Translations under genes and position numbers: made by a program | Part shown: positions 5,872 to 55,404 of the stretch, piece by piece | How the letters are laid out: each line of letters starts with the position of its first letter | How positions within the stretch are numbered: the first letter of the stretch is position 1 | Notes under the pieces: model-generated | The model's database searches: none | Told to the model about the DNA's origin: nothing | Seen by the model: only the letters and a program-made list of their open reading frames with translations | Assembly: GCF_006345805.1 (NCBI RefSeq) | Contig: NC_043000.1 | Span: 160,270,001-160,334,000, forward strand | Source of the DNA: Octopus sinensis | Taxonomy: Eukaryota | Length of the DNA stretch: 64,000 nt | Direction of reading: 5' to 3'

Positions 5872-6055
5872 TTCTTCTTCTTCTTCTTCTTCTTCTTCTT
5901 CTTCTTCTTCTTCTTCTTCTTCTTCTTCTTCTTCTCCTCCTCCTCCTCCTCCTCCTCCTTCTTCTTCTTCTTCTTCTTTTTCTTCTTCTTCCTATACTTT
6001 TTCTTCTTCTTTTCTTCTTCTTCTTCTTCTTCTTCTTCTTCTTCGTCTTTTTCTT
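5872..6055. repeat. (CTT)n/(CCT)n trinucleotide tract
   Basis: Seen directly; source of the poly-K/E/L/F ORFs. Confidence 0.97.
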
Positions 6056-7139
6056 CATGCGACTTAACAGAGCGTCGCTGCATCCACCTTTTTATTAGTG
6101 ACAACTTTACACGGCTCAGGGGCCAACTCTCCAACCTATGGTCCATTGATTGCTGATGACGGTTTTACGAGATCGGAGTGCCAATCTTACCTCAAGCTCT
6201 TTTAGACGCCTTTTACGACACGCAGAGGAAACATTCGATCTATTCTTTGATATACTTGTCCCCACACTTCTGTTGTGAAATAGTTCCGTCATGTAATCTG
6301 ATTTCGAAAATGGATAAGGTAATCGAATACGATAATTGTATTAACTTTTGTTCCGTTTTGGAAAATCTGTTTAGTTAACTATCCTTTCTTATTCGGCCTG
6401 CTATTCATTGTAAACCAACTTTTTAATCATTGGTGATTTTGCTACAAATATTTAGAAATGAATATAATAATTCGTCCAAATTTTATTGATATGATGTTAT
6501 TGGATGACGACTTTTTTGTCACATGAATCAGCTCAAATTCGAAGTAATTTGGGGTAACTTGCGCTTTGCTCGACCCTAGATCTACTTTATTCAAAATAAC
6601 CTATATTCAAAGGTTATAACGAAATAACCCAGGATTGTTTTCTATTGAGGTTTTCTCAGAAAAAATTATCTATTATCGTACGTGTTAGATAATAAGTCTA
6701 TTTTGCATGATGTTAAAGGGAGATAAAATTGAGATTGGATAGTTGTTCCACAAACATAAATTTGATTGAAAGAATACTTTCGAATGATAGCCGTGGCAAT
6801 TGACTTGGAGATAATTTCAACCTACGAAAGTTAAAAGGCAAAGTTGATCTCTGCATAATGAGTCGTCACTAAATACAGCCTGGGACGAAATCTTGCCATC
6901 GATTCCTTCTGCCATATATCTAAACAATGCAATCTGCATATTTTATTATTTATGTTCCACTGCAGCCGACAGAATAGTCACTAGTGGTTTGATTATGTCA
7001 ATTGAAACTAAAGTACTGCATTGTTTAGAAAACAATTACCTTGGGACATAGTAAGATAATTAGTTTCTTGCTGTCAATACTAGTTTGCAATAACAGGCTA
7101 GGACTTATCTTCTTTTCAGTCTTATATAGCCGCAAGCTT

Positions 7140-15997: not shown

Positions 15998-16331
15998 CAA
16001 GGGTTCTCAACCATTTTTTATCTATGGATTTCGATCACTATTCTCTTCTGGTGGGCTACCATACCTATTCAATGTTAAAAAATTACTTTTATAGAAACTT
16101 CTTTCAAAATTACATTTTTTTCTTTTCAAACATTCACTTGTATAGTTTGAAGTATGTAAAATGTTAGTGTAAAAACTTAGTTGCTTCTTGCAATACGTAC
16201 ATCTAAAGCAACGATTTCTCAGGGTATTTGGAATACTATTGTGGATTACCAATTCCCCATTTAGTGCATAAACGCCCCAAAATCATATATAGACTCTCAG
16301 GGGCCATATGGACCCCAGTTGAGAACCACTG
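15998..16331. mobile_element. hAT-type MITE relic
   Basis: The ends CAAGGGTTCTCAAC and GTTGAGAACCACTG are imperfect TIRs of the CAGTGGTTCTCAAC (Charlie-like) type. No TSD is recognisable. Confidence 0.55.
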
Positions 16332-16445
16332 GTTTACATATATATATCTAAATCTATCTCACTATCTCTCTCTTTATATATATATACACACACACACATA
16401 CACACACATATATATAGAGAGCTAGACAGATACATAATAGATAGA

Positions 16446-19400
16446 TATATTGTATAAAGGGCATTATTACACATAAATGCCTCACACTAGGAGGGACAAA
16501 GTCATTACTACCAAAAATTATACTAATCATACCCAAATGCAGTTTTTCAAAGCAAGACATTTAAAAATGAATTATGTTCTGTATCACCGTGATTTCACAT
16601 ACAACTTGCGTCTAATGATCTTCAGCAGAACTGATTCTGAATACATCATAAATAAACCAACCTTATGTAGCGAAGACGAACAGACAACTGTTCACTCCGG
16701 CCAAGCACATGGAATGTTTATAAATCATATATCCGGTAAATGGCGGGCTTTTTACGAACTGCATGTCGGTAGTAATGAAGTATTTCGGAATAAGTTTAAC
16801 AATTAAGGATAATCTCTTAATAGGGATCTTAACAAGAAATTATCGGGTAGCTAGCGTGAAAACCTCATAAAAGAAAAGAATCCGAAAATAATTTTTTTCT
16901 TTTGAACAAATTAATTATATCTATATGTATAAAGGGCATTATTACACATAAATGCCTCACACTAGGAGGGACAAAGTCATTACTACCAAAAATTATACTA
17001 ATCATACCCAAATGCAGTTTTTCAAAGCAAGACATTTAAAAATGAATTATGTTCTGTATCACCGTGATTTCACATACAACTTGCGTCTAATGATCTTCAG
17101 CAGAACTGATTCTGAATACATCATAAATAAACCAACCTTATGTAGCGAAGACGAACAGACAACTGTCACTCCGGCCAAGCACATGGAATGTTTATAAATC
17201 ATATATCCGGTAAATGGCGGGCTTTTTACGAACTGCATGTCGGGTAATGAAAAGTATTTCGGAATAAGTTTAACAATTAAGGATAATCTCTTAATAAGGG
17301 ATCTTAACAAGAAATTATCGGGTAGCTAGCGTGAAAACCTCATAAAAGAAAAGAATCCGAAAATAATTTTTTTTTTTTGAACAAATTAATTATATCTATA
17401 TTGTATAAAGGGCATTATTACACATAAATGCCTCACACTAGGAGGGACAAAGTCATTACTACCAAAAATTATACTAATCATACCCAAATGCAGTTTTTCA
17501 AAGCAAGACATTTAAAAATGAATTATGTTCTGTATCACCGTGATTTCACATACAACTTGCGTCTAATGATCTTCAGCAGAACTGATTCTGAATACATCAT
17601 AATAAACCAACCTTATGTAGCGAAGACGAACAGACAACTGTTCACTCCGGCCAAGCACATGGAATGTTTATAAATCATATATCCGGTAAATGGCGGGCTT
17701 TTTACGAACTGCATGTCGGGTAATGAAAAGTATTTCGGAATAAGTTTAACAATTAAGGATAATCTCTTAATAAGGGATCTTAACAAGAAATTATCGGGTA
17801 GCTAGCGTGAAAACCTCATAAAAGAAAAGAATCCGAAAATAATTTTTTTCTTTTGAACAAATTAATTATATCTATATTGTATAAAGGGCATTATTACACA
17901 TAAATGCCTCACACTAGGAGGGACAAAGTCATTACTACCAAAAATTATACTAATCATACCCAAATGCAGTTTTTCAAAGCAAGACATTTAAAAATGAATT
18001 ATGTTCTGTATCACCGTGATTTCACATACAACTTGCGTCTAATGATCTTCAGCAGAACTGATTCTGAATACATCATAAATAAACCAACCTTATGTAGCGA
18101 AGACGAACAGACAACTGTTCACTCCGGCCAAGCACATGGAATGTTTATAAATCATATATCCGGTAAATGGCGGGCTTTTTACGAACTGCATGTCGGGTAA
18201 TGAAAAGTATTTCGGAATAAGTTTAACAATTAAGGATAATCTCTTAATAAGGGATCTTAACAAGAAATTATCGGGTAGCTAGCGTGAAAACCTCATAAAA
18301 GAAAAGAATCCGAAAATAATTTTTTTTCTTGAACAAATTAATTATATCTATATTGTATAAGGGCATTATTACACATAAATGCCTCACACTAGGAGGGACA
18401 AAGTCATTACTACCAAAAATTATACTAATCATACCCAAATGCAGTTTTTCAAAGCAAGACATTTAAAAATGAATTATGTTCTGTATCACCGTGATTTCAC
18501 ATACAACTTGCGTCTAATGATCTTCAGCAGAACTGATTCTGAATACATCATAAATAAACCAACCTTATGTAGCGAAGACGAACAGACAACTGTTCACTCC
18601 GGCCAAGCACATGGAATGTTTATAAATCATATATCCGGTAAATGGCGGGCTTTTTACGAACTGCATGTCGGGTAATGAAAAGTATTTCGGAATAAGTTTA
18701 ACAATTAAGGATAATCTCTTAATAGGGATCTTAACAAGAAATTATCGGGTAGCTAGCGTGAAAACCTCATAAAAGAAAAGAATCCGAAAATAATTTTTTT
18801 CTTTTGAACAAATTAATTATATCTATATTGTATAAAGGGCATTATTACACATAAATGCCTCACACTAGGAGGGACAAAGTCATTACTACCAAAAATTATA
18901 CTAATCATACCCAAATGCAGTTTTTCAAAGCAAGACATTTAAAAATGAATTATGTTCTGTATCACCGTGATTTCACATACAACTTGCGTCTAATGATCTT
19001 CAGCAGAACTGATTCTGAATACATCATAAATAAACCAACCTTATGTAGCGAAGACGAACAGACAACTGTTCACTCCGGCCAAGCACATGGAATGTTTAAA
19101 TCATATATCCGGTAAATGGCGGGCTTTTTACGAACTGCATGTCGGGTAATGAAAAGTATTTCGGAATAAGTTTAACAATTAAGGATAATCTCTTAATAAG
19201 GGATCTTAACAAGAAATTATCGGGTAGCTAGCGTGAAAACCTCATAAAAGAAAAGAATCCGAAAATAATTTTTTTCTTTTGAACAAATTAATATATATAT
19301 TGTATAAAGGGCATTATTACACATAAATGCCTCACACTAGAGGGACAAAGTCATTACTACCAAAAATTATACTAATCATACCCAAATGCAGTTTTTCAAA

Positions 19401-21277
19401 GCAAGACATTTAAAAATGAATTATGTTCTGTATCACCGTGATTTCACATACAACTTGCGTCTAATGATCTTCAGCAGAACTGATTCTGAATACATCATAA
19501 ATAAACCAACCTTATGTAGCGAAGACGAACAGACAACTGTTCACTCCGGCCAAGCACATGGAATGTTATAAATCATATATCCGGTAAATGGCGGGCTTTT
19601 TACGAACTGCATGTCGGGTAATGAAAAGTATTTCGGAATAAGTTTAACAATTAAGGATAATCTCTTAATAAGGGATTTAACAAGAAATTATCGGGTAGCT
19701 AGCGTGAAAACCTCATAAAAGAAAAGAATCCGAAAATAATTTTTTTCTTTTGAACAAATTAATATATATATTGTATAAAGGGCATTATTACACATAAATG
19801 CCTCACACTAGGAGGGACAAAGTCATTACTACCAAAAATTATACTAATCATACCCAAATGCAGTTTTTCAAAGCAAGACATTTAAAAATGAATTATGTTC
19901 TGTATCACCGTGATTTCACATACAACTTGCGTCTAATGATCTTCAGCAGAACTGATTCTGAATACATCATAAATAAACCAACCTTATGTAGCGAAGACGA
20001 ACAGACAACTGTTCACTCCGGCCAAGCACATGGAATGTTTATAAATCATATCCGGTAAATGGCGGGCTTTTTACGAACTGCATGTCGGGTAATGAAAAGT
20101 ATTTCGGAATAAGTTTAACAATTAAGGATAATCTCTTAATAAGGGATCTTAACAAGAAATTATCGGGTAGCTAGCGTGAAAACCTCATAAAAGAAAAGAA
20201 TCCGAAAATAATTTTTTTCTTTTGAACAAATTAATTATATCTATATTGTATAAAGGGCATTATTACACATAAATGCCTCACACTAGGAGGGACAAAGTCA
20301 TTACTACCAAAAATTATACTAATCATACCCAAATGCAGTTTTTCAAAGCAAGACATTTAAAAATGAATTATGTTCTGTATCACCGTGATTTCACATACAA
20401 CTTGCGTCTAATGATCTTCAGCAGAACTGATTCTGAATACATCAAAATAAACCAACCTTATGTAGCGAAGACGAACAGACAACTGTTCACTCGGCCAAGC
20501 ACATGGAATGTTTATAAATCATATATCCGGTAAATGGCGGGCTTTTTACGAACTGCATGTCGGGTAATGAAAAGTATTTCGGAATAAGTTTAACAATTAA
20601 GGATAATCTCTTAATAAGGGATCTTAACAAGAAATTATCGGGTAGCTAGCGTGAAAACCTCATAAAAGAAAAGAATCCGAAAATAATTTTTTTCTTTTGA
20701 ACAAATTAATTATATCTATATTGTATAAAGGGCATTATTACACATAAATGCCTCACACTAGGAGGGACAAAGTCATTACTACCAAAAATTATACTAATCA
20801 TACCCAAATGCAGTTTTTCAAAGCAAGACATTTAAAAATGAATTATGTTCTGTATCACCGTGATTTCACATACAACTTGCGTCTAATGATCTTCAGCAGA
20901 ACTGATTCTGAATACATCATAAATAAACCAACCTTATGTAGCGAAGACGAACAGACAACTGTTCACTCCGGCCAAGCACATGGAATGTTTATAAATCATA
21001 TATCCGGTAAATGGCGGGCTTTTTACGAACTGCATGTCGGGTAATGAAAAGTATTTCGGAATAAGTTTAACAATTAAGGATAATCTCTTAATAAGGGATC
21101 TTAACAAGAAATTATCGGGTAGCTAGCGTGAAAACCTCATAAAAGAAAGAATCCGAAAATAATTTTTTTCTTTTGAACAAATTAATTATATCTATATTGT
21201 ATAAAGGGCATTATTACACATAAATGCCTCACACTAGGAGGGACAAAGTCATTACTACAAAAAATTATACTAATCAT
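16446..21277 (-). repeat. Left arm of 476-bp HHR satellite (retrozyme-like array): 10 full monomers plus a partial one
   Basis: The period of ~475-476 bp is shown by recurring ORF starts (16477, 16952, 17428, 17904, 18379, 18855...). HHRs lie on the minus strand at plus-coordinates 16576, 17051, 17527, 18003, 18478, 18954, 19425, 19897, 20372 and 20847. Confidence 0.97.
16576..16631 (-). ncRNA. Type I hammerhead ribozyme motif of the 476-bp monomer (first left-arm copy)
   Basis: Reverse complement of the motif detailed for 21596-21651; identical sequence. Confidence 0.75.
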
Positions 21278-24200
21278 TTATGTGTAATAATGCCCTTTAT
21301 ACAATATAGATATAATTAATTTGTTCAAAAGAAAAAAATTATTTTCGGATTCTTTTCTTTTATGAGGTTTTCACGCTAGCTACCCGATAATTCTTGTTAA
21401 GATCCCTTATAAGAGATTATCCTTAATTGTTAAACTTATTCCGAAATACTTTTCATTACCCGACATGCAGTTCGTAAAAAGCCGCCATTTACCGGATATA
21501 TGATTTATAAACATCCATGTGCTTGGCCGGAGTGAACAGTTGTCTGTTCGTCTTCGCTACATAAGGTTGGTTTATTTATGATGTATTCAGAATCAGTTCT
21601 GCTGAAGATCATTAGACGCAAGTTGTATGTGAAATCACGGTGATACAGAACATAATTCATTTTTAAATGTCTTGCTTTGAAAAACTGCATTTGGGTATGA
21701 TAGTAGTATAATTTTTGGTAGTAATGACTTTGTCCCTCCTAGTGTGAGGCATTTATGTGTAATAATGCCCTTTATACAATATAGATATAATTAATTTGTT
21801 CAAAAGAAAAAAATTATTTTCGGATTCTTTTCTTTTATGAGGTTTTCACGCTAGCTACCCGATAATTTCTTGTTAAGATCCCTTATTAAGAGATTATCCT
21901 TAATGTTAAACTTATTCCGAAATACTTTTCATTACCCGACATGCAGTTCGTAAAAGCCCGCCATTTACCGGATATATGATTTATAAACATTCCATGTGCT
22001 GGCCGGAGTGAACAGTTGTCTGTTCGTCTTCGCTACATAAGGTTGGTTTATTTATGATGTATTCAGAATCAGTTCTGCTGAAGATCATTAGACGCAAGTT
22101 GTATGTGAAATCACGGTGATACAGAACATAATTCATTTTTAAATGTCTTGCTTTGAAAAACTGCATTTGGGTATGATTAGTATAATTTTTGGTAGTAATG
22201 ACTTTGTCCCTCCTAGTGTGAGGCATTTATGTGTAATAATGCCCTTTATACAATATAGATATAATTAATTTGTTCAAAAGAAAAAAATTATTTTCGGATT
22301 CTTTTCTTTTATGAGGTTTTCACGCTAGCTACCCGATAATTCTTGTTAAGATCCCTTATTAAGAGATTATCCTTAATTGTTAAACTTATTCCGAAATACT
22401 TTTCATACCCGACATGCAGTTCGTAAAAGCCCGCCATTTACCGGATATATGATTTATAAACATTCCATGTGCTTGGCCGGAGTGAACAGTTGTCTGTTCG
22501 TCTTCGCTACATAAGGTTGGTTTATTTATGATGTATTCAGAATCAGTTCTGCTGAAGATCATTAGACGCAAGTTGTATGTGAAATCACGGTGATACAGAA
22601 CATAATTCATTTTTAAATGTCTTGCTTTGAAAAACTGCATTTGGGTATGATTAGTATAATTTTGGTAGTAATGACTTTGTCCCTCCTAGTGTGAGGCATT
22701 TATGTGTAATAATGCCCTTTATACAATATAGATATAATTAATTTGTTCAAAAGAAAAAAATTATTTTCGGATTCTTTTCTTTTATGAGGTTTTCACGCTA
22801 GCTACCCGATAATTTCTTGTTAAGATCCCTTATTAAGAGATTATCCTTAATTGTTTAACTTATTCCGAAATACTTTTCATTACCCGACATGCAGTTCGTA
22901 AAAAGCCCGCCATTTACCGGATATATGATTTATAAACATTCCATGTGCTTGGCCGGAGTGAACAGTTGTCTGTTCGTCTTCGCTACAGAGGTTGGTTTAT
23001 TTATGATGTATTCAGAATCAGTTCTGCTGAAGATCATTAGACGCAAGTTGTATGTGAAATCACGGTGATACAGAACATAATTCATTTTTAAATGTCTTGC
23101 TTTGAAAAACTGCATTGGGTATGATTAGTATAATTTTGGTAGTAATGACTTTGTCCCTCCTAGTGTGAGGCATTTATGTGTAATAATGCCCTTTATACAA
23201 TATAGATATAATAATTTGTTCAAAAGAAAAAAATTATTTTCGGATTCTTTTCTTTTATGAGGTTTTCACGCTAGCTACCCGATAATTTCTTGTTAAGATC
23301 CCTTATTAAGAGATTATCCTTAATTGTTAAACTTATTCCGAAATACTTTTCATTACCGACATGCAGTTCGTAAAAAGCCCGCCATTTACCGGATATATGA
23401 TTTATAAACATTCCATGTGCTTGGCCGGAGTGAACAGTTGTCTGTTCGTCTTCGCTACATAAGGTTGGTTTATTTATGATGTATTCAGAATCAGTTCTGC
23501 TGAAGATCATTAGACGCAAGTTGTATGTGAAATCACGGTGATACAGAACACAATTCATTTTTAAATGTCTTGCTTTGAAAAACTGCATTTGGGTATGATT
23601 AGTATAATTTTTGGTAGTAATGACTTTGTCCCTCCTAGTGTGAGGCATTTATGTGTAATAATGCCCTTTATACAATATAGATATAATTAATTTGTTCAAA
23701 AGAAAAAAATTATTTTCGGATTCTTTTCTTTTATGAGGTTTTCACGCTAGCTACCCGATAATTTCTTGTTAAGATCCCTTATTAAGAGATTATCCTTAAT
23801 TGTTAAACTTATTCCGAAATACTTTTCATTACCCGACATGCAGTTCGTAAAAAGCCCGCCATTTACCGGATATATGATTTATAAACATTCCATGTGCTTG
23901 GCCGGAGTGAACAGTTGTCTGTTCGTCTTCGCTACATAAGGTTGGTTTATTTATGATGTATTCAGAATCAGTTCTGCTGAAGATCATTAGACGCAAGTTG
24001 TATGTGAAATCACGGTGATACAGAACATAATTCATTTTTAAATGTCTTGCTTTGAAAAACTGCATTTGGGTATGATTAGTATAATTTTGGTAGTAATGAC
24101 TTTGTCCCTCCTAGTGTGAGGCATTTATGTGTAATAATGCCCTTTATACAATATAGATATAATTAATTTGTTCAAAAGAAAAAAATTATTTTCGGATTCT

Positions 24201-24754
24201 TTTCTTTTATGAGGTTTTCACGCTAGCTACCCGATAATTTCTTGTTAAGATCCCTTATTAAGAGATTATCCTTAATTGTTAAACTTATCCGAAATACTTT
24301 TCATTACCCGACATGCAGTTCGTAAAAAGCCCGCCATTTACCGGATATATGATTTATAAACATTCCATGTGCTGGCCGGAGTGAACAGTTGTCTGTTCGT
24401 CTTCGCTACATAAGGTTGGTTTATTTATGATGTATTCAGAATCAGTTCTGCTGAAGATCATTAGACGCAAGTTGTATGTGAAATCACGGTGATACAGAAC
24501 ATAATTCATTTTTAAATGTCTTGCTTTGAAAAACTGCATTTGGGTATGATTAGTATAATTTTGGTAGTAATGACTTGTCCCTCCTAGTGTGAGGCATTTA
24601 TGTGTAATAATGCCCTTTATACAATATAGATATAATTAATTTGTTCAAAAGAAAAAAATTATTTTCGGATTCTTTTCTTTTATGAGGTTTTCACGCTAGC
24701 TACCCGATAATTTCTTGTTAAGATCCCTTATTAAGAGATTATCCTTAATTGTTA

Positions 24755-24755
<1 letters not shown>
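21275..24755 (+). repeat. Right (inverted) arm of 476-bp HHR satellite: ~7.3 monomers
   Basis: Reverse complement of the left-arm unit. HHRs lie on the plus strand at 21596, 22072, 22546, 23021, 23494, 23971 and 24445. Confidence 0.97.
21596..21651 (+). ncRNA. Type I hammerhead ribozyme motif of the 476-bp monomer (first right-arm copy)
   Basis: GUUCUG [CUGAAGA] UCAUUAGAC-gcaa-GUUGUAUGU [GAAA] UCACGGUGA U A / CAGAAC. Stem I is a perfect 6 bp and extends via GAAU:AUUC. Stem III is the near-palindrome AUCACGGUGAU. Predicted cleavage is at 21645/21646. Confidence 0.75.
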
Positions 24756-24787
<32 letters not shown>

Positions 24788-24889
24788 TACAAGCGAAAAG
24801 AATGTAGTGAACAAGACTTTTTAATACGTTAATTTACGATTGTTGATCTGAATACTGTCTGATCAATCGTGCTGTAACATTCGTTTATA

Positions 24890-25765
24890 TATTGATCTCT
24901 GTCGGCATGCTCTTTGATCTCTGTCGGCACCCTTTTTGATCTCTGTCGGCACCCTCTTTGATCTCTATCGGCACCCACTTTGATCTCGGTCGGCACCCTC
25001 TTTGATCTCGGTCGGCACCCTCTCTGATCTCTGTCGGCACCCTCTTTTATCTCGGTCGGCACACTCTTTGATCTCTGACGGCACCCTCTCTGATCTCTGT
25101 CGGCACCCTCTTTGATCTCGGTCGGCACCCTCTTTGATCTCTGTCGGCATCCTCTTTGAACTCGGTCGGCACCATCTTTGATCTCTGTCGGCACCCTCTT
25201 TGATCTCTGTCGGCACCCTCTTTGATCTCGGTCGGCACCCTCTTTGATCTCGGTCGGCACCCTCTTTGATCTCTGTCGACACCCTCTCTGATCTCTGTCG
25301 GCACCCTCTCTGATCTCTGTCGGCACCCTCTTGGATCTCTGTCGGCACCCTCTTTGATCTCGGTCGGCACTCTCTTTGATCTCTGTCGGCACCCTCTTTG
25401 ATCCCGGTCGGCACCCTCTCTGATCTCTGTCGGCACCCTCTTTGATCTCGGTCGGAACTCTCTTTGATCTCTGTCGGCACCCTCTTTGATCTCTGTCGGC
25501 ACCCTCTTTGATCTCTGTCGGCACCCTCTTCGATCTCTGTCGGCACCCTCTTTGATCTCGGTCGGCACCCTCTTTGATCTCTGTCGGCACCCTCTTTGAT
25601 CTCATTCGGCACCCTCTTTGATCTCGGTCGGCACCCTCTTTGATCTCGGTCGGCACCCTCTTTGATCTCTGTTGGCACCCTCTTTGATCTCGGTCGGCAC
25701 CCTCTTTGATCTCTGCCGGCACCCTCTTTGATCTCTGTCGGCACCCTCTTTGATCTCTTTCGGCA
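24890..25765. repeat. 22-bp GC-rich minisatellite (GATCTC[T/G]GTCGGCACCCTCTTT), ~39-40 copies
   Basis: The unit is read directly; three units give the 22-aa period seen in all three minus-strand ORFs. Confidence 0.97.
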
Positions 25766-26535
25766 CCGTCTTGGTTATTGTTGTCGTCGTCGCTCTTATT
25801 GTTGCTGTTGTTGTTGCTGGTGGTAGGAGTGGCTATGGAAATAGAACTTTAAATCCCCAAATAAGAAATTTTTTATTGACTCTTCTCTTGACTTAGCTAG
25901 TATTTTCCTGCTATCGTCATAATGAGCACCTTTAGTTTTAATTATGTTAGTTGGTAGCAGAGGAATTAGTACCTCTAAGTATTAGTATTATTGTTTATTT
26001 AGCTTGGGTTGGATTATATTAACTTAGTTCTTTTCTCTGATTTTTCTCACAATTTCACTTGGACAGTGTAGTTTGTAGAATGTAAATACTATAAATATTT
26101 TCCGACCACATGTAGCTAGGTGGTTACTGAAATGTATCTAATGGACATGCTGGTGCACACATGAAAGTTCTGATCGACTCATCAGATGCCATTAAGATGG
26201 CATATTCAATGAACGAGACTCATCGGAAATACGTATATAAGCTATTTGTAATTTCCTTTCATGGGTCTGGATCGGTGTGTGCCATGTTCAACTGCATATA
26301 TTATTGCATAATGTAAAAGGATTGATGAAATCGAATTCAGATGAAACGACCGTAAATTGATGTATTTAAAAGACTTGTTTTCTCCATTTTTGCTTGTAAT
26401 TTCAGAACCTGTTCAGATATTCTTGTATATGTAGATGGTTTGTTTTTATAAAGCAAGAAGTCCTCGAAGTAGTTTTATGAAAGTCGAATAACAAAAGTGT
26501 GCAGGTCAGCTCACTCAATTGGTAGTAATGACATT

Positions 26536-30038: not shown

Positions 30039-31276
30039 TTTTATATTTTCACATCAATTCCATATTACACTTCAATTATTTTAGAATTAAACCATTGTAA
30101 ATGTGTAACCGTTTATACGCTGGGTTGACCCATACTAATCTATTGCATTTCAGTTTGATATTATAGCGATCGATCATAGAATATGCATCGTTCTTTTTTC
30201 CTGTTTATATTTCTCCACTTTCTCCTTCTGTTTCCTCTTAAACCACCCACTAACTGGATTATCTGCTGAATCAGCTTCTTGAATTAAATGATGAACAGTT
30301 ATTTCCGTGAAATGAATATTTTTGCGAAAATGTTTAAGGCAATATAAATTAAAAGTTATGCAATAAAGTTGATGCCCATAAAGTTAGACAAAGACATATT
30401 ATTGCAACACTCTTTATACGCTGTTTAATGTTTGTATTATATTTCGGGAAAGCATTAATATAAGATAGAAATAATGCAATACTCCACAGAAAAGTATAAT
30501 TATCGCTAAGCAAATGTGCGATGTTCTGGCCTGCCGATAATAAAATATATTCTCCAAACTTTTTTCATTATGTTTTATCTTATATTTGATAAGGTGACAG
30601 TTTCCCACAATATAATAGAAACATTAAGCAACCTATATGCTTCGATGTAATATTTTGTAGATATCTTTAATAGCTTGTATTTTGTCTTTATTCATTAGTA
30701 TCGTTTTACAAATTTTACATATTTTCTCACCTCAACTATTTGAAAGTTTTTCTCAAAATATTACCATTTTATTATCTTCATTTTATACTTGTCCCAGCTT
30801 GTACCACCTTACGGAAAGTTACAGGAAAGAATCGAAACCGATTCCATCAAGGTAAGACGAAGGAAGAAGTATTGCACCGAGTTAGAGACAAACGTCATTT
30901 AACGATTCGTGCTACTAGTAGCCTAATACTAGGTAGGCTTTTATAACACCCTGTGGCCTAACATATTGAAAAATCTCAAAATTCAGAAAACCTACATTAC
31001 ATACATATAGCAGGGATGACTTCTAAGTGGACATCCATTGGGTTTGTGATTAATCTTTATATTTTGTATCTTTTCATTTGTCTTGCTCGCCTACGTTCTT
31101 GCGTTTACTGAATGCTTTTGAGAACAATCTTTCCTCAGTGGTCAGACCATACAGGGTGTACCTCTAGCATAATGGATGCCGACTTAGTGGTCATCCCTCA
31201 TATATATATATATATATGTACATATACAAATACATATACATACGTACATGCGTATATACACACACAATATATGTAT

Positions 31277-31379
<103 letters not shown>

Positions 31380-31654: not shown

Positions 31655-32571
31655 ATGTGTATATATACATGTGTGTGTGTGTGTGTGTGTGTGTGAGTGT
31701 GTTTGTATGTATGCATGTATGTATTTATGTATGTATGTATAGAGCGTTTAAAGTAGAATACATATATTGTATATTGTAAAAGAGGAGGCAGTCAGAATTT
31801 TGGATAATCCTTTACTAGCGTTTTCGTTCATTTACTAAGTCAAGACCATCAAAATCAAAATGATAAAACTGGAACTTTCCTTGTTCATTTATGTGAATCG
31901 GTTGTTACTTTGTTTTGCTTAATATTGTTGTTGTTTTTTTTTGAAAAACAGAGAGAGAGAAAGAAAGCAAAGCGCTGTAGGGAAATAGATTGAGAGGTTG
32001 TACTTAGTTGCGCAATGCTCAGTTTCGTTGCCTGTTTTATTCTCTCCTTCATTAATTCTAAGGTGTATTTCTGCTTCATAGGTTAGATTTGACGTAATTT
32101 GCGGTAAATCACCATAGTGCAAATACAACTTGTCATGCTGTATGGGATGTTCCTTTTGACGTGAGGGATGGCAAGAATAGAAATTCAAATATTGGTGCGT
32201 GACCGCTTTTTTTTGTTAAATATGACTAATTTATGAATGTACTGGTACTTAACATTTGTCCATACAAAACAGAATTACACAGAATATGGGACCTGGCTGC
32301 ACATTGTGAAAGAATATACGTTATCATAGGAGTTTGAACTCTTTTTTTATTTTTCAGTGATGGCGGCATCCACCACCTTTTCTTATTTCTTCCAACCTGC
32401 ATCCTAAGATTGACACCTTTGAAAGGTCACCAACCCTCGTGAGAAAATGGAATAAGTAAAAAGAAAGAAAGGAGAAAGGAAAATAGAAATGAGATTTCAA
32501 TAAATTGACCATACCAAATTGAAAAGAATCCTCTCTCTTTCTCTCTTAGTCTATCAACCCTTTCCCCATCC

Positions 32572-32613: not shown

Positions 32614-34570
<1,957 letters not shown>

Positions 34571-48758: not shown

Positions 48759-49999
48759 ATGGCAATGAAAAATAACAAAATTTTGGAATGGGAAATCATA
48801 CCACCTAAAAAGTGGTTAAAAGACCGTGAAGATAGGACGGTGGTGTTGAGAACCTACTCCAAGGCACTCGACATCATCGCCCTATTCGAAAAGACGGCAA
48901 TTGAAAAGGAGTTGGAAGAGTATTTGCCAACAATTAAATTCATTTCCAGGGGTGTCAAATATGCAACGGTGTGGTTGCTATTTGACACCCCTGAAGAGGC
49001 TTGCAAATTTGCTAGCAAACCCCTGGAGGGTAAGGAAATCTTATTCCTGCCCACGTACAAAAAAAGAAATTGATGAAAGCTTGGATTTGCGGGCTGCCAC
49101 CCGACATAGAACCCGAGTGGATAGAGGAGACTATCCGCCGGGGTCTGGGTGGCAGCGAAACTAAGCTCCTTAATGTAAAACTTCTTCCTGCGGCTGCTTG
49201 GGTTGGGTCAAAAGCAATTTTGACCCTGTGGACCCAATCAGCCAATCTGGTTCTTCCAGATTTTTTGAAAATGGCCGGGTGCAGGTACCCGGTGATGCTT
49301 GAGGGTCGCCCCCCTAAGTGTCATCGGTGCTTGGAGTCCGGCCACATAAAGAAGAACTGTCCTCGGGAACAAAATAGGATCCCGGAACAGTTAAGTAAAA
49401 CCCCTCTAGAAGAGGGAACGATAACGGCCGAGAAAGCAGAGGACTCCTCAAACAGAGGCCGAAAGAGGAAGGTGAGCAACAATGGGTGCTCACCAAAGGA
49501 TAATAGGGATGAGGAGAGGAAGGCGAATCTTCCAGCCACGGAGGAGACGCACCCTCCCTCAGTTGAAAAGGGAAAAAAAAAGAAAAAGAGGAAGAAAAAC
49601 GGGACATTACCGGCTGTCAGTGTAGCACCGGAATGTCCCGGAACTACGTCGGTTGGGGTTGTGCCACCGACAAGAGAAGGAATACCGTTGGCGGGAACTG
49701 TGCCGCCAACGAAAGAACTGAACGTATTGGTCCTCTTCTATAGAGGAGGAGAAATTGAAAAAAAAATGATGGAAGAGCACCACAAGGGAGCAACTTTAGC
49801 CTTCACACAGGACCCCGAATGGCCTCCGCAGATAGCTGTGGAGGCCGTGGCGTTCGACGTAACGCTTGGGCTAAAGGAGCTCAATGAAGATTATAGCTTG
49901 GTCCCGGGCGACGCGCACTCGGAACTTGATTACGTTCTGAGGGAGGCGTGGTTGATGGTGGAGGGCGCGGGCACAAGCTATTTCGAGGACGATATGTAA
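48759..49999 (+). CDS. ORF1p/gag-like nucleic-acid-binding protein with CCHC zinc knuckle, interrupted by one -1 frameshift at ~49060
   Basis: ORFs 48759-49073 and 49070-49999 overlap at an A run (TACAAAAAAAGAAATTGATG). The product has an RRM-like N-terminal part, CHRCLESGHIKKNC (CX2CX4HX4C) and a basic/low-complexity tail. Confidence 0.78.
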
Positions 50000-50014: not shown

Positions 50015-50150
50015 TATTAATAATGGACTGCTAAGTCCAAAAATTGAAAAATTGTAAGAGGTTTAATACCTCGTTTTGTATGTCTATTAATAATGGACTG
50101 CTAAGTCCAAAAATTGGAAAAATTGTAAGAGGTTTAATACCTCGTTTTGT
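50015..50150 (+). repeat. 65-bp tandem duplication (period 70) in the retroelement 3' UTR
   Basis: TATTAATAATGGACTGCTAAGTCC...CCTCGTTTTGT occurs at 50015-50079 and 50085-50150. Confidence 0.93.
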
Positions 50151-51459: not shown

Positions 51460-51688
<229 letters not shown>

Positions 51689-53019
51689 ATATGCGTATAT
51701 ATGTGTATATATAAGTATATGTACACATATAAATATACATACATACACATATATATGTATATTGCGTTGTTGTGTTTTCTCTTTGCGTTTTCATGTTCGG
51801 ATTAACTATATATATATATTTATATTTTATTTTTTATTATATATAGTTTCAGCTCACTAGGTGTGGCCATGCTGGGGCATATATATAAATATATATATAC
51901 ATATATACAGTGTGTATGTATTTGTGTGTGCGTGCGTGCGTGCGTGCGTGTGCTTGGATGCCTGTGTGCGTATCCATGCATATCTTTTTCAAAGTTTAGT
52001 TGACAGCGATTTTGAAATTTCGGGCTGCTTAGGATTCATCGGATTGTGGCATATTTGAGTCTATCTTCTAAACTAGGTTGAACTCCTGTGTTGAATGATA
52101 TTTAGGCTGTGAGTTAGGTTGTCATAGAAAGCTCTGATGGAAAATTGGATCACATAAGGCGTTTATAATGTTTTAAAAGCTATGCTTCTTAATACTTTGT
52201 AACCACGCGTCTCTTTCAGTGTATCAGCTTCAGATCCTGGGATTTATATGTATGAGTTTGTGTGTGAGCGCGTGTATATTCATATTTACATTACATTACA
52301 CACTACCCGTGAAAATTTCGATTATTCAAATAATTTAAATAAAATTTAATTAAAATAATGCAATAGAAAAATTAAGCAAGTTTTACCTTTAACAATGATG
52401 TTGAATTGATGCGAATAAAACCAGAATAAACGGAAATGGATAGTAACTAATGGAAGCTGTCTTGGTAAGTCAAAAGCTGTGGAATAATTTCTTACTAGTA
52501 AAGAAATGTTTCGTGATAGCTATTAGGAGACTAGAATATATTACGTACGTTATGGGATTCTAATATTATAACAGAAATTATAATTAGACTGTTAGCGTAA
52601 GGGAATTCTTTATAATATGAATTGAATTCCATGACGGATTCACACGCTGGCAATAAATTGAAGTTACATATCTATTCGTGAAAAGGGTGAATTATATTAG
52701 AATGATTATTCTTCGAGAGTAGTGAACAAGTTAAGAAGAACAATGTAAATAAAATTCAGGTATAATACCTGGCCATTGCTAATAGCCTGCGAAAACTTTT
52801 AAGATTAAGCAAAAGGGTTTTAAGTCTGTAAAAAGAAATTTTGTGATTTATAAGGGAGATATTCAGTATCTGCTGTTTCTCAGAAGTGTAGAGCTGGTAA
52901 AATATAGTGACGTATCGGGATATATGACTCCGCTTTTGATCTTTATAGGAAAGTTAAATAAAATGGCTTTCAAGCTTGTTTTTTATGTCTATATTAAAAG
53001 AAAGGAGAGAAAAAGAACT

Positions 53020-55158: not shown

Positions 55159-55193
<35 letters not shown>

Positions 55194-55234
55194 TATTATT
55201 TTTATTATTATTATAATTATTATTGTTATTATTA

Positions 55235-55327
<93 letters not shown>

Positions 55328-55340
55328 TTATAATTATTAC

Positions 55341-55403
<63 letters not shown>
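55150..55403. repeat. (ATC)n/(ATT)n tract
   Basis: Seen directly. Confidence 0.97.

Positions 55404-55404
<1 letters not shown>

Follow-up and report, generated by a model that had tools for sequence, protein, structure and literature searches.

A candidate retrozyme-type tandem repeat with an atypical hammerhead motif in the genome of Octopus sinensis

A 64,000-nucleotide stretch of the Octopus sinensis genome (NCBI RefSeq assembly GCF_006345805.1, contig NC_043000.1, positions 160,270,001 to 160,334,000 of the forward strand), referred to here as the window, contains an 8.3-kb block of tandem repeats (window positions 16446-24755) whose units carry a hammerhead ribozyme motif. Computational analysis of this block led us to conclude, with a probability of about 60%, that it represents a new family of metazoan retrozyme-type repeats without long terminal repeats (non-LTR retrozymes), in which the hammerhead is probably atypical and, as judged from predicted folds, dimer-dependent. 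The class itself is an established one, so that the block looks like a new family within it and not like a new kind of system.

A 56-nt motif, GTTCTG-CTGAAGA-...-GAAA-...-GATA/CAGAAC (the slash marks the predicted cleavage site), was found in 17 copies with 0 mismatches among them (0 expected in shuffled sequences), of which ten (16576..20902) are minus-strand and seven (21596..24500) plus-strand copies. All 17 copies contain the complete core CUGANGA...GAAA...UH, in the form CUGAAGA ... GAAA ... UA/C, and its elements follow the type I order (stem I 5' strand, core, stem II, GAAA, stem III, UH, stem I 3' strand). Stem I is composed of the 6-bp helix GUUCUG:CAGAAC and, beyond a 2x3 internal loop of CA opposite AUA, of a further 4 bp, GAAU:AUUC. 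Stem II opens with a U-U, contains 3 + 3 bp around a 2x2 mismatch (U-U/A-G) and is capped by GCAA, while stem III, formed by the near-palindrome AUCACGGUGAU, has an A-U pair plus 3 bp and a 3-nt loop. Alternatively, U21609 and U21630 in the reference copy may be regarded as two unpaired U's beside a reversed C-G pair. The 2x3 internal loop, 6 bp up stem I, is a candidate for loop 1, and the stem II mismatch pair together with the GNRA loop is a candidate for loop 2. None of the archetypal conserved loop 1-loop 2 bases is present in this motif, and the hammerheads of mussel retrozymes likewise lack them (PMC7229834). The initial annotation of this DNA had reported 17 identical motifs composed of a 6-bp stem I, a 2x3 loop, CUGAAGA, a GCAA-capped stem II, GAAA, a near-palindromic stem III and a UA cleavage site; the identity of the copies was confirmed over all 56 nt, and every one of these parts was located in the copy at 21596-21651.

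The frequency at which such a motif arises by chance was estimated with a permissive type I descriptor, which required at least 5 pairs in stem I (with G-U counted), CUGANGA, pairing at 3 of the first 4 positions of stem II, GAAA, a stem III with A-U and at least 3 pairs, and U followed by a non-G base. In the window, this descriptor matched only the 17 array sites. Random sequence with the same composition as the window contained 6 matching sites in 400 Mb, which corresponds to 1.5e-8 per base or, with both strands counted, approximately 1.4e-5 per 477-bp monomer. Dozens of chance matches would be expected from a genome-wide scan, but a chance match inside a given tandem-repeat unit is very unlikely.

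Folding analysis pointed to a hammerhead that is assembled from two neighboring units. The minimum free energy (MFE) of the 69-nt reference hammerhead was -10.4 kcal/mol, and that of the hand-drawn hammerhead fold was -9.0 kcal/mol. The stem III hairpin alone was computed at +0.8 kcal/mol, and stem III is predicted to be stable only in the dimer. Two motif copies co-folded at -32.3 kcal/mol as a double hammerhead, compared with 2 x -10.4 kcal/mol for the separate copies. The same fold was the unconstrained MFE (-147.5 kcal/mol) of the natural 568-nt stretch 21578-22145, in which one monomer lies between two complete motifs. In this structure, the two AUCACGGUGAU segments pair with each other over 10 bp around a G-G, each GUUCUG is bound to CAGAAC in the partner copy, the stem II hairpins of both copies are present, both cores are open, and the monomer's own rod is retained between them. 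Forcing two separate stem III hairpins in this stretch cost 5.1 kcal/mol. In the ensemble, pair probabilities were 0.88-1.0 for the shared stem III, approximately 0.8 for the crosswise stems I and approximately 0.66 for the tip of stem II, and the CUGAAGA bases were unpaired with probabilities of 0.68-0.98.

The monomer, with a unit length of 471-477 bp and a guanine-plus-cytosine (GC) content of 33%, contains no tRNA-like element, and a 125-amino-acid open reading frame (ORF) that runs through the array had no match in the protein database. As an RNA of ribozyme polarity it is highly structured. The 476-nt monomer cut at the predicted site folded at -125.7 kcal/mol, compared with -94.4 +/- 5.3 kcal/mol for shuffled sequences (z -5.9), and its first six bases, CAGAAC, were paired with GUUCUG near the 3' end; the antisense linear monomer folded at -95.7 kcal/mol (z -2.6). 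As a circle, the sense consensus had a z of -5.4 and 161 pairs, 18 of them G-U, with 68% of its bases paired, and the antisense consensus had a z of -2.8 and 131 pairs, 8 of them G-U. Because the structural excess is confined to the ribozyme-sense strand, these predictions argue for selection on an RNA of that polarity.

The block is not one array. Tandem Repeats Finder (TRF) detected a 474-475-bp repeat with 98% matches over the whole span and split it into two arrays, the consensus units of which are reverse complements of each other (Table 1). The two arms mirror each other for approximately 3.5 kb at 98.7% identity with a 48-nt spacer between them, and they are divergent, i.e. the ribozyme-sense strands point outward from the center. 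The initial annotation had described a single array of 17 units, which proved to be wrong, as there are two inverted head-to-head arrays with 10 minus-strand and 7 plus-strand motifs. Its 476-nt spacing holds inside each arm, where motifs are 471-477 nt apart, but not between the two innermost motifs, which belong to opposite arms and are approximately 0.7 kb apart. Likewise, cleavage after GAUA, as it had predicted at 21645, applies to the plus-strand copies but not to those on the minus strand.

The block lies inside a (TAGA)n microsatellite. Its flanks ATAGATAGA and TAGATAGATAG are on the same strand, join into a single unbroken (TAGA)n in register, and are not reverse complements of each other. 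Within these microsatellite flanks, no target-site duplication was recognizable. If the inversion had arisen later by a simple event, a break precisely at the edge of the array would be required. The simplest account of the layout is that insertion itself produced both arms, each with its 3' end outward.

Variation among the copies is low. Alignment of fifteen full units revealed differences at 42 of 479 columns, nearly all of them singletons or indels of a single base; the array is accordingly very young, noisy or both. The motif, which accounts for 17 x 56 nt, holds 0 of approximately 39 variant events where approximately 5 were expected (Poisson p ~0.006, hand count); little weight is given to this, since the variants outside the motif are for the most part 1-nt indels in homopolymers. 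Two adjacent units, M3 and M4 (window 19902-18960), both carry 137G>T and a 3-nt deletion at 140-142. In unit M9 of the left arm (17056-16582), the 8-nt block TTCATTAC at coordinates 282-289 is replaced, with every base differing from the consensus. This is the only multi-base substitution in the array, and it may reflect either a local rearrangement of small size or an artifact of alignment or assembly.

From the features described above we infer transcription, cleavage, circularization and mobilization by a Penelope-like element, which may proceed as follows. Each arm would be transcribed outward from the center as a multimer, and the self-paired body of the monomer would draw two neighboring hammerheads together, forming a double hammerhead in which a 10-bp stem III is shared and the stems I are crosswise. 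Such pairing of neighbors would be needed because stem III is too weak alone. Cutting after ...GGUGAUA would then release 471-477-nt monomers that start with CAGAAC, and the GUUCUG:CAGAAC helix could keep the ends of the freed monomer adjacent for a cellular RNA ligase, giving a compact circle. Such an RNA might serve as the template for a reverse transcriptase acting in trans, most likely one from a Penelope-like element, which would explain the multicopy head-to-tail array, the inverted 5'-truncated array at its 5' end and the microsatellite target. Only the architecture of the insertion points to this link with Penelope-like elements.

It is possible, and we suggest it only tentatively, that the locus is a near-pristine record of one integration, in which circular or multimeric retrozyme RNA was reverse transcribed by a rolling-circle process primed from both ends of a nicked (TAGA)n, either by twin priming or in the style of Penelope-like elements, leaving two outward multimer arrays joined head-to-head by a 3-nt microhomology. 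In this tentative scenario, the hammerhead variant, with its U-U at 10.1-11.1, its long interrupted helix II and its AUA triplet, would be one that no current covariance model sees and that is active only as a double hammerhead assembled by the monomer's rod.

Several observations weigh against a retrozyme-type repeat. No Rfam hammerhead family was matched at the gathering score in the window, or at E<=10 in either a 9.2-kb segment (16000-25200) or a 111-nt slice (21570-21680), so that the covariance-model search, set as a check by the initial annotation, came out negative. The quasi-invariant G10.1-C11.1 pair of helix II is absent, with a U-U in its place (21609, 21630), and at the same place, the base of stem II, pairing probability was only approximately 0.31 in the ensemble of 21578-22145; this is the weak point of the predicted fold, in agreement with the caveat of the initial annotation that stem II opens with a U-U and is only partly paired. 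The isolated 95-nt motif region was no more stable than shuffled sequences (z +1.6). The copies are approximately 99% identical and differ mostly by 1-nt indels, and hence they provide no covariation and no real test of core conservation. The variants common to M3 and M4 are evidence of some duplication or conversion in place after the array was formed. A single locus was seen, as the remainder of the window contains only chance-level matches of 12-23 nt to the repeat, and searches for relatives by DNA pattern yielded 0 in each of two metagenome scans and one viral scan. The unit of 476 bp is slightly above the 150-450 bp quoted for metazoan non-LTR retrozymes. Neither a Penelope-like reverse transcriptase nor a GIY-YIG endonuclease was detected in the window by Pfam analysis of the long ORFs and of ten further stop-to-stop ORFs; the long ORFs gave only weak, sub-threshold matches to zf-RVT and zf-CCHC.

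The results with Rfam at all thresholds, with stem II and with the unstable isolated motif, together with a sequence diversity too low to reveal purifying selection, the DNA-level duplication indicated by M3 and M4 and the single locus in the window, would also be expected of an ordinary, recently amplified satellite that grew by unequal crossing-over with no RNA life cycle, and in which the motif is a decayed relic or a coincidence and does not cleave. We consider such a satellite unlikely. The chance rate is approximately 1e-5 per monomer despite the permissive descriptor, and neither an excess of RNA structure on exactly the ribozyme strand nor a whole-transcript MFE that is a complete double hammerhead with open cores is expected of a dead or fortuitous motif; the lack of variants in the motif points in the same direction, weakly. 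The likeness to newt satellite 2, SM-alpha, pDo500 and non-LTR retrozymes that the initial annotation had proposed is upheld in part, by the chance rate, the GC content, a repeat size close to that of the class, the strand-specific folding and the double-hammerhead MFE, but not by Rfam.

The inverted layout gives rise to other explanations. As the arms are 98.7% identical over approximately 3.5 kb around a 48-nt spacer, read-through of both could yield a near-perfect double-stranded RNA of approximately 3.5 kb that feeds small-RNA or RNA-editing pathways, with the hammerhead being incidental. This function, which would be compatible with a retrozyme-type repeat, appears improbable, since transcripts of ribozyme sense leave the center in opposite directions and would not pair with one another, so that only read-through from outside would make the hairpin, and since the inverted layout is more simply explained as a by-product of insertion (PMC8557442). 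Furthermore, the inversion could be an artifact of assembly or long reads, arising either from a chimeric fold-back read or from two arrays joined in error, with a single direct array at the true locus; the copies do differ mostly by 1-nt indels, as in a noisy long-read consensus, and tandem plus inverted structures of this type are reported to trouble assembly (PMC8557442). A fold-back chimeric read is excluded because it would have given a right flank that is the reverse complement of the left, and the flanks are instead the same microsatellite in the same strand and register. An artifact of any kind is very improbable, given that the arms start at different coordinates (52 and 103), that the 48-nt spacer and the 3-nt microhomology leave no perfect palindrome, and that copy-specific variants are not mirrored between the arms. 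A retrozyme-type repeat with a dimer-dependent hammerhead is the reading that we favor.

Table 1. Features of the opposed arrays, their hammerhead motifs and the surrounding sequence (window coordinates)
Feature	Position	Strand	Details
Left arm	16446..21277	-	10.2 tandem units, period 475; hammerhead sense is the minus strand; sense strand runs from monomer coordinate 52 (window 21277) to coordinate 136 (window 16446)
Right arm	21275..24755	+	7.3 tandem units, period 474; hammerhead sense is the plus strand; sense strand runs from monomer coordinate 103 to coordinate 263
Head-to-head junction	21275..21277		3-nt overlap CAT/ATG common to both arms (microhomology)
Asymmetric spacer, 48 nt	21227..21274		left-arm monomer coordinates 55-102; lies between the mirrored arms
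Left flank ATAGATAGA	16437..16445	+	piece of a (TAGA)n microsatellite; left flank ends ...ACATAATAGATAGA
Right flank (TAGA)7TA	24756..24785	+	begins TAGATAGATAG...ATAATTAC
Reference hammerhead with stem I extension	21590..21658	+	56-nt motif itself 21596-21651
Stem I extension, 5' side (GAAU)	21590-21593	+
CA loop	21594-21595	+
Stem I, 5' strand	21596-21601	+
CUGAAGA	21602-21608	+
Stem II	21609-21630	+	GCAA loop 21618-21621
GAAA	21631-21634	+
Stem III	21634-21644	+
A17	21645	+	predicted cleavage between 21645 and 21646
Stem I, 3' strand	21646-21651	+
AUA loop	21652-21654	+
Stem I extension, 3' side (AUUC)	21655-21658	+
Hammerhead motif copy	22072..22127	+
Hammerhead motif copy	22546..22601	+
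Hammerhead motif copy	23021..23076	+
Hammerhead motif copy	23494..23549	+
Hammerhead motif copy	23971..24026	+
Hammerhead motif copy	24445..24500	+
Hammerhead motif copy, innermost of left arm	20847..20902	-	predicted cleavage between 20853 and 20852
Hammerhead motif copy	20372..20427	-
Hammerhead motif copy	19897..19952	-
Hammerhead motif copy	19425..19480	-
Hammerhead motif copy	18954..19009	-
Hammerhead motif copy	18478..18533	-
Hammerhead motif copy	18003..18058	-
Hammerhead motif copy	17527..17582	-
Hammerhead motif copy	17051..17106	-
Hammerhead motif copy	16576..16631	-
Microsatellite (TTC)62	5872-6056
Microsatellite (AT)90	31200-31378
Microsatellite (ATT)87	34287-34547
Microsatellite (TA)152	51460-51762
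Microsatellite (ATT)71	55192-55404

The window is unusually rich in long pure microsatellites (77 TRF rows in 64 kb). Just left of the array, at 16353-16432, is a near-palindromic compound (TC)/(TA)/(CA) microsatellite, on which Rfam look-alikes of mir-1277 and mir-3688 scored 26-29 bits against gathering scores of 81-84 and are most likely due to chance; other weak microRNA and small nucleolar RNA look-alikes in Rfam, on microsatellite or AT-rich sequence, were also rejected as chance. A minisatellite with the 22-bp unit TTGATCTCTGTCGGCACCCTCT (24892-25772, 40 copies, 91% matches) starts 137 bp past the right end of the array and produces long spurious repeat ORFs on the minus strand, such as one of 297 amino acids at 24829-25722, with no credible Pfam match.

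Remnants of other retroelements were also found in the window. On the minus strand, 33129-34229 encodes a decayed C-terminal reverse transcriptase fragment of a non-LTR element (long interspersed nuclear element, LINE), which has a weak zf-RVT match and adjoins (ATT)87; it has 647 database relatives, the best with 65% identity (33738-34229), and the matches include a fish and a sea anemone. An ORF of 309 amino acids on the plus strand (49070-49999), with a weak, sub-threshold CCHC zinc-knuckle match, is gag-like and probably belongs to another retroelement; 1.9 copies of a 71-bp unit at 98% identity come after it (50015-50150). A segment that resembled a Penelope-like motif (31922-32215, minus strand) was dropped, as it had no Pfam match and no homologue.

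Retrozyme-type repeats are a recently recognized, abundant source of small circular RNAs in animals. If the family described here is active, it would add the cephalopods, a lineage for which no described retrozyme was found, and would indicate that standard Rfam screening misses some hammerheads. It would also provide an unusually clean insertion, in which the two arrays are opposed, the microsatellite target is intact and the junction shows microhomology. Such an insertion bears directly on how these repeats are copied back into DNA, for which a rolling-circle route of Penelope-like elements has been proposed. Should the motif prove not to cleave, the block is just another young satellite. 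The most notable parts are the insertion architecture and the hammerhead variant invisible to Rfam.

Metazoan non-LTR retrozymes, established in cnidarians, molluscs (mussel), amphibians and many other phyla (PMC7229834), are the closest framework for this repeat (Cervera and de la Pena 2020, PMC7229834; Li, Clavereau and Pollet 2026 preprint, 10.64898/2026.07.22.740005). Like them, it is a short, low-GC, non-coding tandem repeat with one type I hammerhead per unit and a highly self-paired monomer RNA (PMC7229834), and it appears to be without LTR, primer-binding site and polypurine tract; its GC content of 33% compares with the values below 45-50% quoted for the class. With 10 and 7 units and an MFE of -10.4 kcal/mol, it has the at least two consecutive units and the complete hammerhead with an MFE below -5 kcal/mol by which the 2026 preprint defines such elements. 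It differs from the class in its 9-position interrupted helix II with a GCAA cap, the U-U at 10.1-11.1, the AUA triplet, the lack of Rfam detection, and the twin inverted arrays, which are not a feature described for metazoan non-LTR retrozymes. No description of cephalopod hammerhead repeats, of cephalopod retrozymes or of the present family was found in the literature, and the 235 Rfam Hammerhead_1 matches in the giant squid genome were the sole mention of cephalopod hammerheads that was found.

In the typical metazoan type I hammerhead, helix III measures 1-2 bp and carries a small palindromic loop, and these ribozymes work as double hammerheads in tandem transcripts (PMC4209133; PMC7229834). 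In newt satellite 2 and the axolotl repeats, helix III is weak and cleavage needs a double hammerhead of neighboring units (PMC7229834; PMC4209133), and the same fold is predicted here. They differ in that Rfam Hammerhead_1, which covers those ribozymes, has no match here and in that helix II is much longer here. The satellite pDo500 of Dolichopoda cave crickets (PMC2837043) is alike in its unit of approximately 500 bp, with a hammerhead in each monomer that can act in single or double form. Across many species and populations, that satellite has been shown to have conservation and compensatory changes (PMC2837043), whereas the copies here are approximately 99% identical.

The 2026 preprint (10.64898/2026.07.22.740005) argued that the pseudo-LTRs of Penelope-like elements gave rise to the non-LTR retrozymes of vertebrates, and Penelope elements are reported in cephalopods generally (PMC6962438). 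The hammerheads of Penelope-like elements (Cervera and de la Pena 2014, PMC4209133) resemble the present motif in their enlarged helix II, their small palindromic helix III and an odd nucleotide that separates A9 from the first pair of stem II, and they differ in that G10.1-C11.1, absent here, is conserved there. Penelope-like elements have paired motifs on opposite strands 100-700 bp apart (PMC4209133), a range comparable to the distance between the two innermost motifs here. Their insertions show partial tandems, an inverted 5'-truncated copy abutting the 5' end and a bias for microsatellites (Craig et al. 2021, PMC8557442); non-autonomous derivatives of these elements insert as multiple head-to-tail copies, and target-site duplications are obscured in microsatellite targets (PMC8557442). 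The same layout is seen here, as the arms begin at coordinates 103 and 52 and meet head-to-head with a 3-nt overlap, and the (TAGA)n flanks in register provide the microsatellite target.

Two of the unusual parts of the motif also have counterparts among proven ribozymes. A long, interrupted, tetraloop-capped helix II occurs in proven natural hammerheads, and sCYDV-RPV (+) and ELVd (+) are natural active hammerheads with an AUA triplet (PMC1636495). These two are type III motifs of plant viroid or satellite RNAs, and the likeness to them is one of tolerated core-adjacent variation and not of ancestry.

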